From positions 1 through 60,438 of the forward strand of contig NIVC01001254.1 of the NCBI GenBank assembly GCA_002269645.1: a DNA stretch of 60,438 bases. The letters are read 5' to 3'. The position numbers and the translations under genes are program-made. The notes beneath the pieces were generated by a model. The model saw only the letters and a program-made list of their open reading frames with translations. It was not told where the DNA came from and made no database searches. Positions 7,305-18,942 of the stretch are shown one piece after another. The DNA comes from Macrostomum lignano. Its lineage: Eukaryota. Positions within the stretch are counted from its first letter, which is position 1. Each line of letters starts with the position of its first letter.

Positions 7305-10300
7305 TCAGGCTTCCTGCTCAGCTTGCTGCTCCTGCTGCGGCTGGGCCTGTTGCTGCTGCTGCCCGCCCGGAGTTGGAGTCGCATTTTCCGACATCCTTGA
7401 CGTTGCGCGACTGTTGACGATGTCGTCCCAGCGTTCGCCTGTTACCGACTGATTTCCCGACACGTTGGTGTCCATCTTGCGCCTCTCGCGTTCCAGCGCG
7501 CTGATGAATTTCGAAACTTGAGGGTTGTCGCGCTCGCCGCGGCCCTCAATAAAGTAGGTCTTCACCTTGTTGGACTGAAAAGTAGTAGTAGTAGTAGTAG
7601 TAGTAGTAGTAGTAGTAGTAGTAGTAGTAGTAGTAGTAGTAGTAGTAGTAGTAGTAGTAGTAGTAGTAGTAGTAGTAGTAGTAGTAGTAGTAGTAGTAGT
7701 AGTAGTAGTAGTAGTAGTAGTAGTATTTAGATAATGCAGCTTTTTCGAAACGGTTTTTGGTTGATTAAAGTTTCATTCTAACTTTCGGTGCTGATAAACT
7801 ACGAGCGTATTGATGGCAGTGCTAATTGTTCCAGAAAGTTCTAGCTTGTTCAGAGTGGTCTGGAGAGGCGCATTAATTGATTAGATGCTGTTTAAACGCA
7901 GGCGACGCACCTTGAACTGAATCTCTTTCCCCTCAGCAAAGTTGTACACCGAGTATTTCTCCAGCTTTTTCCGGGTTGTCTCGCTCACGTGCAGACGCAT
8001 GGGCTGAAATTGAGGTGGGTCTGCGAGCCTGCATTGCCCCAGCAATGTTCAACAGCCCAGCTATACGTCTCGACTATATGGGTGCAAGCAAACTAATTAA
8101 ACTGATGAAAGCAATTTGAATTATTACTTTTAATTCTGTCTCTATTAAATGTTACTAAAGATGCTCCAGTCAGGCAAGACTTTAAGTCGTTAGAGGATTC
8201 AAAATTTTCAAATTAAGTTGTCTTCTTAATTAAATTAAACGAGACCAGACAATGACTGACAGGTCCAGACGAGTACATAAATGATTGGCCTTTCCCATGG
8301 TCTGACAAATTCAATTGTAGTTGGTTTGCATGCACCATCAGCTGACTGAAACTACCAATAAACCCACCGTGCCATCGGACTCCATCCGCGATGCAGTGTT
8401 GACTGTGTCGCCAAACAGGCAGTACCGGGGCATTTTGAGACCAACAATACCGGCCACAACCATGCCGGAGTGCGCGCCTGTTGCCAAAAAAATGATCAGA
8501 TGAACTTGTTTAGAGTAATTAAACCACCACATTAATCAATAAAAAAATCTGGAAAGAAATTTCATCCGTGTTTTAATCCCGACGCCTGTTTCACTCTGAA
8601 AACGAAAAAAATCCCTACATAAAGATCCGTAATCTTTTTTGCTGTTGATTGAAGTGTAACAAAAATCTAAAAATAAAACGTTAAAAAACACCGTGCTGAT
8701 TACATCTGAGTGTACTTTTCTATTAAATTAAGCAGCCTTTTGAAAACTTTAATCCTCTGATGTTGCTTCAGCATAGGCCAGGCTTATTCTATAAATATAC
8801 GGAGAAAAAATATCTTCTACAAATTTATTTGAAACTAGAAGCCCAGTAAAAATACGATTGCAAACTGAGACAATCCTTGGCGTGATCAATTGCAGTGGCG
8901 TCTCACTTCTTCTTAAATTAATGTCTGCACAGCGATAACTTCGATGAACTTCGTGATATGCTATAGTCCTTTTTCTTTTGAGAACTTTGAGAAATAAGCT
9001 TCACCCAGGATGACTCGAGTTTGATTCGATCAGCCATAGTGAATTTTAGTTGATGGGGGTTGACTGGATCTCGAGCGCAAAATCGGTTTCGCATTCCTCT
9101 GCGTGAGCAGTCAATCTTGTCTTGATGCCCAGAATGGAACTCCCTTTTAAATCTTTCTGCTTAAAATTATTTGCAATCTGAGCTGATCAGATAGACTGAA
9201 GCCTTTGACTTCTAACTGAACAACTGGCCAATGAAATCTTCGAATCCATAGAGATTCATCTTATCGAATAGGGGCCGCATAAAGTACCTACCAACGCGGA
9301 TTCGCAGGTGCGGCGTCTGTCCAGTGGGGTCCACGCACTTCACTATGTTCTTCACCATGTCCAGGCCCATCTCAGCCACGAATGCGGCGTGAAACTTTGT
9401 CACGGTTGGACAGCCGGACACGATCATGTAAGCGTCGCCGATTGTCTCCACCTTGTACACCTTGTGCTTCTCTGTCAACTCGTCAAATACCGAGTACATA
9501 CCATTAAGCATGTCTACAACCTGCAGCGGCTGCAGCCTCGAGCTAATATTAGTAAAGCCTACAACATCGCTAAACAAAACAGTGACGTCGTCGAAGGTTT
9601 CGCAAGTGTCGATAGCACTGGTGCCGCTGCGAAGTCGCTCGGCAACGCCCTTCGGTATCATCTGGTACAGCAGCTCGTCTGTGCGCTTCATCTCCTCGTC
9701 CAGCTTGCACATGGACTCCTCCAGCTGACGCGATTTCGCCTCTTCCTGGAAAAGTTTGGAACTCAAATTTAGGACCTGCGTATGAAAGGTTTTTACACAA
9801 AAATGCAACCCTTACTGCTTCGAGTGCCTCCTTGAGCTCGGCAGACTGCTGATCACCGGCGAGGACAAGGTCTCGGCTGGAGTCGTGCATGCTCAGGTCA
9901 TTGATGTAAAGTCCCAAGTTGGCCATCACAGACACGTCGCGCATACTGCTCAGGACAAGAGAATGATGCAAAAATTTAAAGCAATAGTTAATGTCTGAAA
10001 GCGATATTTGTATTGATGCTAATTCTTGACCAGTGACAGTCCAGTTTGTCAAATTTTTATTTCTAGAAGCCTTGCTTCATTGTAATCATGTCAGTAATCT
10101 GGTTAGGTAAAGTATCTGTTTTGTTTAGATTTTCAGTCTTACACTAGCAATCTAGTGCGGCCCCCCTTCGGGGCGCCCAATAAGAAAGGAGCAAAAATAG
10201 TTCATGGAAAACAATAAAAAAACACATTTTCTTAAACACTAATTCCTTCTTCACATTTTAAAAATCACCTTATTCGTGTAAAATTGTCACGGACTAAGAT

Positions 10301-18942: not shown

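Follow-up and report, generated by a model that had tools for sequence, protein, structure and literature searches.

A Probable Head-to-Tail Pair of Helitron1-Like Elements in an Exon of One Soluble Guanylate Cyclase Copy of Macrostomum lignano

The maize alleles sh2-7527 and ba1-ref and the Ipomoea DFR-B allele are spontaneous Helitron insertion alleles in which splicing and the gene product are altered or abolished. Elements of the Helitron1 group (Kapitonov and Jurka 2001) are marked by a 5' TC, a 3' CTRR, a hairpin near the 3' end and insertion between A and T, with neither target duplication nor inverted termini (PMC5148889). Helitrons arranged head to tail in arrays have been described for Myotis lucifugus, Drosophila, rice, maize and some fungi (PMC5148889). 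The present analysis deals with a locus in the flatworm Macrostomum lignano at which two Helitron-type elements, designated A and B, lie in exon 3 of a soluble guanylate cyclase (sGC) gene. The DNA analysed is the whole of contig NIVC01001254.1 (60,438 nt, GCA_002269645.1), referred to below as the window. No description of M. lignano Helitrons was found in the searchable literature.

The contig is part of assembly Mlig_3_7 of M. lignano DV1, which is described in PMC5730564, and proteins encoded in the window carry the name Macrostomum lignano. GenBank annotation of the assembly is derived from RNA-seq, combining StringTie/TACO with de novo transcripts (PMC5730564). Three paralogous genome copies, S, L1 and L2, are present in DV1; their single-nucleotide difference is 2.2% and their divergence consists mostly of indels (PMC10733133). 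Very probably, a related pair of non-autonomous Helitron1-like elements inserted head to tail at an A|T in exon 3 of one copy of the cyclase and left that copy effectively null. The pair would occupy one DV1 genomic copy, at an A|T within a split isoleucine codon (A|T + T).

The interrupted cyclase exon

The cyclase gene is on the minus strand. Exon 1 (18942-18184) starts MYGLL and encodes the H-NOX domain, and is followed by exon 2 (17709-17640) and exon 3 (17382-17275). Exon 3 ends CCA A and is missing its last base, a T now found at 10143. Exon 4 (9945-9816) has a phase-2 acceptor, CAG|T, at 9946|9945. Exons 5 (9775 or 9745 to 9292), 6 (8477-8368), 7 (8003-7911) and 8 (7574-7305, stop included) span 7305..9775 and encode the coiled coil, the catalytic cyclase domain and the C-terminal tail; all are open and have canonical splice sites. 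When the block 10144-17274 is excised, the eight exons form an open reading frame of 1,995 or 2,025 nt (664 or 674 codons) in which every intron is GT-AG. For exon 5 the frame permits either of two acceptors separated by 30 nt, CGCAG|GTC or TTCCAG|GAA (9745-9775, minus strand), which give products of 674 or 664 aa, respectively; the upstream acceptor is used by older gene models and the downstream one better fits the homologues.

The host gene is a soluble guanylate cyclase of the Gyc-88E/gcy-31 (atypical beta-like) type. Pfam PF07700, PF07701 and PF00211, corresponding to H-NOX, H-NOXA and the class III cyclase, are recorded on its products. Residues 1-557 of the restored protein align with human sGC beta-1 (6jt0_B, E = 5e-101), and the alignments with both human and Manduca sGC beta-1 are ungapped across the junction of exons 3 and 4. 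Among named proteins, 'soluble guanylate cyclase 88E' and 'gcy-31-like' entries are the closest relatives; they cover 45-100% of the query at 46-62% identity (mostly 46-52%), and flatworm orthologues reach 59% identity. A search with the 79-aa peptide encoded by exons 3 and 4 matched nothing beyond short fragments of single exons in other species.

Base by base, the minus strand of exon 3 ends GAC GCC ATT GTG TTT CTG GGC ACG CCA A, with its last base at 17275. At the 5' outer junction, TTTCTGGGCACGCCAA (to 17275) is followed directly by TCCTATATACTAAAAATG from 17274, and the element sequence from 17274 onward is TCCTATATACTAAAAATGAAATGTCTGTAACTAACTAG. At the 3' outer junction, GGGCGCCCCGAAGGGGGGCCGCACTAGATTGCTAG (in a longer read, TTATTGGGCGCCCCGAAGGGGGGCCGCACTAGATTGCTAG) has its last base at 10144 and is followed by the T at 10143 and then by GTAAGACTG. 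The inserted block, 17274-10144, is 7,131 bp long. The displaced T and the original donor GTAAG (10142-10138) together occupy 10138..10143, and the acceptor of exon 4, also in phase 2, reads CCTGAGCAG|TATGCGC at 9946|9945. The host sequence is thus CCAA|...|TGTAAG, and excision yields CCA AT|GTAAG with an A|T target, no target-site duplication and a restored intron of 197 nt (10142-9946). The target falls between bases 1 and 2 of the split ATT codon (Ile313) at the end of exon 3. The insertion is in the sense orientation. Directly after exon 3, which is left one base short, comes TCCTAT in place of a GT, and the native donor T|GTAAG has been moved 7,131 bp downstream. The sequence expected for the empty site is CCAATGTAAG (as a 40-mer, GTGTTTCTGGGCACGCCAATGTAAGACTGAAAATCTAAAC), that for the two outer ends of the filled site is GGGCACGCCAATCCTATATACTAAAAATG and CACTAGATTGCTAGTGTAAGACTGAAAATC, and that for a clean splice of exon 3 to exon 4 is CACGCCAAT|TATGCGCGAC.

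An earlier note on this DNA had described a Helitron doublet within the last codon of a cyclase exon, with the splice donor displaced by 7.1 kb. The gene model agrees with that description, and on re-reading of the sequence its coordinates, bases, phases and 197-nt intron are all correct. Its numbering of exons 3 and 4 and its phase-2 junction match the gene model as well as the ungapped alignments with human and Manduca sGC beta-1, and its proposal that excision restores a phase-2 donor suited to the phase-2 acceptor is borne out in the restored reading frame.

Filled and uninterrupted versions of the gene both appear to be represented among recorded M. lignano proteins. The 90%-identity cluster that includes the window product has three members, PAA70266.1, A0A1I8GB62 and A0A1I8H7Y0, of which the last two belong to a series of entries that we take to be the annotation of the earlier ML2 assembly. 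Over 507 consecutive residues, spanning FLGTPIMRDVSV (FLGTPIMRDV, a clean junction), UniRef A0A1I8GB62 (532 aa) and the restored protein are identical, and the two part only at the exon 5 donor, which is read through in A0A1I8GB62. UniRef A0A1I8H7Y0 (559 aa) has 302 identical residues, then LYTKNE(I), then 242 more identical residues. PAA70266.1 (BOX15_Mlig013889g1, 324 aa) consists of exons 1-3 read into element A for 12 foreign codons, ending at a TAG stop at 17239-17237 (minus strand); no mention of Mlig013889 was found in a literature search. The junction of exon 3 with Helitron sequence therefore appears in two annotations, PAA70266.1 and A0A1I8H7Y0. The earlier note had called for an empty site, and the uninterrupted type does exist in M. 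lignano as the protein A0A1I8GB62. By exact look-up, A0A1I8GB62 and two window open reading frames have no DNA record.

These records bear on two alternatives. One is that nothing was inserted, intron 3 always having been about 7.3 kb long with ILYTKNE as native coding sequence. The single observation in its favor is that gene model A0A1I8H7Y0 has that structure. The extra residues, however, are absent in two M. lignano paralogues, a monogenean orthologue, human and Manduca sGC beta-1, and likewise in A0A1I8GB62, and the foreign stretch begins exactly at an 11-nt motif that also starts element B and a further element, D. The comparisons with the homologues, with A0A1I8GB62 and with the 11-nt motif refute this alternative, and a native long intron is close to inconceivable. 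The other alternative is that the 7.1-kb block arose during assembly, as an artefact in which repeat-rich reads were chimerically joined. In its favor, repeats abound in the genome, scaffolds classed as chimeric between subgenomes make up 36% of the assembly length (PMC10733133), and the block is mostly minisatellite. A random misjoin, however, would not produce base-perfect Helitron ends at an A|T at both outer junctions and restore the reading frame exactly, and the junction of exon 3 with the element recurs in A0A1I8H7Y0, from a different annotation, and in the transcript-based GenBank model. An artefact is thus extremely unlikely. The lengths of the arrays inside the elements could be wrong, which would leave the finding unaffected.

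Elements A and B and their relatives in the contig

Elements A (13818..17274, 3,457 bp) and B (10144..13817, 3,674 bp), both on the minus strand, are non-autonomous and of Helitron type. They meet head to tail at CTAG|TC (13817..13818, minus strand) with zero host bases between them, the junction reading GATTGCTAG (to 13818)|TCCAATATACTAAAAATGG (from 13817), with CCCCCATCCGGGGGTCGAAGATTGCTAG as the longer left flank. The doublet proposed earlier is accordingly two related elements separated by the internal junction at 13818|13817, and the Helitron features checked along with it (TC at one end, CTAG and a GC hairpin at the other, and an A|T target without duplication) are all seen. A 5' TC is present in A, which begins TCCTATATACT (17274), in B, which begins TCCAATATACT (13817), and in D, which begins TCAGATATACT (6851). 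The 3' CTRR is present in A, B and a third copy, C, which end in AGATTGCTAG at 13818, 10144 and 6850, respectively (the end of B may also be given as CACTAGATTGCTAG). The sequence AGATTGCTAG occurs exactly four times in the contig, three of them at element 3' ends. The sequence TCNNATATACT occurs three times in the 60 kb, compared with 0.39 expected, and none of 100 shuffles reaches three; all three occurrences are at element 5' ends.

The two elements have the same plan. Each starts with a 5' arm (about 590 bp in A and 680 bp in B), and the arms align over about 580-680 nt with 83% column identity, or 83-88% in BLAST blocks. The arm is followed by a long minisatellite of about 2.2 kb, which is a 23-bp unit repeated 95.9 times in A (16688-14483) and a 24-bp unit repeated 91.5 times in B (13133-10940), the two monomers being unrelated. 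After the long array comes a short linker containing CACTAGCTAC and then a common 18-bp repeat, TATCTGGGGGATGCTTGC, which is present in 21.9 copies in A (14355-13965) and is degenerate in B (10725-10447). Each element closes with a unique 3' tail in which a GC hairpin precedes AGATTGCTAG. The hairpin is CCCCC-ATCC-GGGGG in A and GGCGCCCC-GAA-GGGGGGCC in B, and the stems (CCCCC/GGGGG in A, GGC.GCCC/GGGG.GCC in B and GGC.GCC/GGG.GCC in C) occupy equivalent aligned positions in all three copies. No open reading frame of a size suited to Rep/Hel is present in the elements or elsewhere in the window, and the long open reading frames in the elements are minisatellite artefacts. A 627-aa 'gene' annotated in GenBank at 10981-12864 (minus strand) is an open frame through the 24-bp minisatellite of B. 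It lacks any Pfam match and almost certainly does not encode a genuine protein, and a homology search with this frame, aimed at further copies of the family, gave zero matches.

Both 5' arms also carry GGTTCGAATC, a segment similar to the T-arm of a tRNA or to a pol III B box, with a run of T after it (16720-16753 and about 13180-13215, minus strand). An origin of this segment from a tRNA or SINE was considered and set aside, as there was no ARAGORN match and no Rfam match at the gathering threshold. The sole Rfam match at E <= 1 was a chance mir-302 match (E = 0.42).

Two further members of the family lie near the 3' end of the cyclase gene. Copy C (6530..6850, plus strand) is truncated at its 5' end and retains the 18-bp repeats, the hairpin and AGATTGCTAG; its 3' tail is 83-89% identical to that of B, and its last 14 bases are as in A and B. 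It points the opposite way from the gene and sits just past its 3' end. The CTAG of C is joined directly to the 5' end of element D (TCAGATATACT, 6851..6861, plus strand), which extends in antisense orientation into the region of the cyclase 3' UTR. A candidate for the 3' end of D, CACTAGATGCTAAG, in a palindrome near 7066-7095, was rejected because its folding is no better than chance. The contig thus contains two direct CTAG|TC junctions (13818|13817 and 6850|6851) and two independent flank contexts for the family, the A+B locus and the C+D locus, this contig being the extent of the survey. The second junction, between C and D, suggests that the head-to-tail arrangement is common in the family.

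Given these structural marks, A and B appear to be Helitron1-like, and strict membership of the clade would need an autonomous partner. An alternative assignment is to the Helentron or HINE type, that is, the Helitron2 group with DINE-1 and the Cg_HINEs of oyster. The layout fits, with a conserved left arm, a central tandem array that differs between copies and a stem-loop in the right arm (PMC7492417). The target, however, is A|T rather than TT, and a T|T boundary would leave CCAATTGTAAG, which breaks the frame to exon 4 and contradicts A0A1I8GB62. Asymmetric or subterminal inverted repeats are not above chance, since a search of the last 300 nt with the reverse complement of the first 30 nt found no terminal inverted repeat, the best 12-mer having 3 mismatches, as in the shuffled control. 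No 5' hairpin is formed by element A, the first 40 nt of which do not fold (0 kcal/mol), and the ends TC...CTAG are marks of Helitron1 (PMC5148889). Assignment to the Helentron/HINE type is therefore very unlikely.

How the doublet came about may be explained in either of two ways. If B was already resident, the host A at 17275 and the first T of B would have formed the required A|T, and element A could have entered there, at the 5' edge of B. The reverse order is unlikely, since B arriving after A would have required a G|T target. A pre-formed composite of A and B could instead have moved as a unit after the 3' end, or terminator, of A was bypassed. Since the arms are only 83-88% identical and the minisatellites are unrelated, A and B are not concatemers of one template.

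Fate of the filled copy

Transcripts of the filled copy would mainly run into element A and stop after the 12 foreign codons, for which the sequence of the unspliced read-through is CACGCCAATCCTATATACT. The predicted product is the 324-aa protein with the H-NOX domain and part of the H-NOXA domain; it would lack the catalytic domain, and the copy would be effectively null. That PAA70266.1 has its stop inside element A indicates a broken copy. All eight exons are intact and match the uninterrupted version, and the insertion is therefore probably recent. Loss of the filled copy would be tolerated because DV1 holds three paralogous copies and uninterrupted-type sequence exists in the species. In a genome with three copies that differ mostly by indels, one copy broken by a transposon is to be expected and should be tolerable.

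Alternatively, the filled copy could be rescued by splicing if the GTCTGT near the 5' end of element A works as the donor of exon 3, so that the doublet is removed in a 7.3-kb intron and a full-length cyclase is made. This cryptic phase-2 donor, AT|GT(CTGT) at 17251..17254 (minus strand), matches A0A1I8H7Y0. Its GT (17252-17251, in GAA AT|GTCTGT) is 22 nt inside element A, is in the same phase as the lost donor and is the sole in-frame GT ahead of the TAG stop. Its use would add 21 nt, or seven residues in frame (LYTKNEI), which would sit between the H-NOXA/PAS domain and the coiled coil, with the remainder of the doublet in an intron of 7,307 nt and AAAAATGAAAT|TATGCGCGAC as the spliced junction. 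Rescue is favored by the correct phase of the GT, by a gene model (A0A1I8H7Y0) that uses exactly this junction, by the intact state of all the downstream exons and by the occurrence of GTCTGT near the 5' end of B as well. The donor is weak, however: the seven native donors all conform to GTRNGN (purine at +3, G at +5), and this one has C at +3 followed by T at +4. In addition, the RNA-seq-derived GenBank model is unspliced at this point and continues to the TAG, and a recent insertion explains the intact exons equally well. A0A1I8H7Y0 has other read-through errors (a VGLLVVSVS tail) that are typical of ab initio prediction, and its cryptic-donor model may be purely ab initio. Rescue to a full-length cyclase as the fate of the copy is thus unlikely, although a minor fraction of transcripts might be spliced through AT|GTCTGT with the addition of the seven residues. 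The earlier note had left it that the allele is either broken or rescued by splicing. With PAA70266.1 stopping inside the Helitron, the balance appears to lean toward broken, and the in-frame cryptic donor leaves some room for rescue.

A more general role for the cryptic donor can be imagined, in which the conserved GTCTGT, located 19-25 nt inside the 5' end of the family, acts as a portable splice donor. This idea is quite unlikely. Were it true, sense insertions at the 3' edges of exons would be spliced out and leave a short in-frame footprint, a coding insertion would become an intron expansion, and landing in an exon would be cheaper in a gene-dense genome.

Several points weigh against the interpretation of the locus as a Helitron1-like pair in an effectively null copy. 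The read-through model PAA70266.1 was perhaps merged from reads of a paralogue exon and reads of other Helitron copies, and so may not prove read-through at this locus because 93% of read pairs in the M. lignano genome multi-map (PMC10733133). The empty site is known from a protein model and not at the DNA level. The hairpins taken singly are not significant relative to shuffles (z from -0.7 to -1.8), and they end 13-15 nt before the terminus, compared with a textbook distance of 10-12 nt. Finally, no autonomous partner is present in the contig, whose copies are the only record of the Helitron family.

The rest of the contig and comparison with known systems

Mini- and microsatellite arrays, of 5-31 bp per unit and up to 1 kb in length, occur elsewhere in the contig at 384-759, 2310-2661, 27943-28990, 29296-30640 and 33511-34350, and further arrays of the same kind are at 37208-37690, 40869-41527, 42443-43058 and 44770-45329. 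Helitron end motifs are found in none of these nine arrays. The density of arrays in the contig is unusual and is in line with the 15% of simple and tandem repeats reported for the genome. Neighboring genes include an intronless gene for an 829-aa SLC26/STAS sulfate transporter (22302-24791, minus strand) and a gene for a Tctex-1 dynein light chain (20965-21459, plus strand), both with a domain match on record; in an exact-protein look-up, their products were found as exact sequences on no other contig. A tandem gene pair on the plus strand (49750-53256 and 55839-58687) presumably encodes poly(ADP-ribose) glycohydrolase-like proteins, judging from the motif GNWGCGAFKGD. Both members of the pair carry in-frame coding minisatellites, one of 72 bp repeated 6 times (50518-50956) and one of 102 bp repeated 3.9 times (58124-58519). 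Motifs in translated open reading frames point to a putative innexin exon broken by a (TCTG)n run (38585-39229, minus strand), a putative nuclear-receptor zinc-finger exon (3110-4508, plus strand) and a putative ETS-domain exon (43898-44353, plus strand).

The locus offers a base-perfect, probably recent Helitron insertion in an animal coding sequence, with the filled and uninterrupted versions both apparently recorded from the same species. Because both versions appear to be on record in one species, Helitrons have probably been active recently in M. lignano, a transgenic model for regeneration. A family of Helitrons laden with minisatellites may feed the high tandem-repeat content of the genome and the indel-dominated divergence of its three subgenomes. 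The insertion also explains two odd GenBank models, the 324-aa truncated cyclase and the 627-aa minisatellite open reading frame.

A and B share all the defining marks of canonical Helitron1 elements; they have no coding capacity, and conservation between copies is limited to the ends and arms. They differ from canonical elements in that the spacing of the hairpin from the terminus is slightly long and about 70% of each element is minisatellite. In layout they are like DINE-1 of Drosophila and Cg_HINE of Crassostrea gigas (PMC7492417), with a left arm, a central tandem array, and a right arm with a stem-loop, and no target duplication. They parallel the 'group 2' Cg_HINEs in that related copies share arms and have unrelated repeat monomers (PMC7492417). 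Unlike DINE-1 and Cg_HINE, which have a TT target and subterminal inverted repeats, A and B have an AT target and no inverted repeat was found in them, and the likeness is one of layout and not of membership.

The direct CTAG|TC junction, found twice in the contig with no host base between the elements, is like that of the head-to-tail Helitron arrays of other organisms. Unlike concatemeric arrays, in this case the arms of the neighbors are diverged and their minisatellites differ. As in the maize and Ipomoea alleles, a multi-kilobase Helitron insertion is located inside a gene. Those alleles are phenotypic mutants with characterised transcripts, whereas the M. lignano case is from a flatworm, involves redundant copies and is known from sequence. 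Relative to these systems, the locus presents no new kind of element or mechanism, and the disrupted cyclase copy is a clean but ordinary example.

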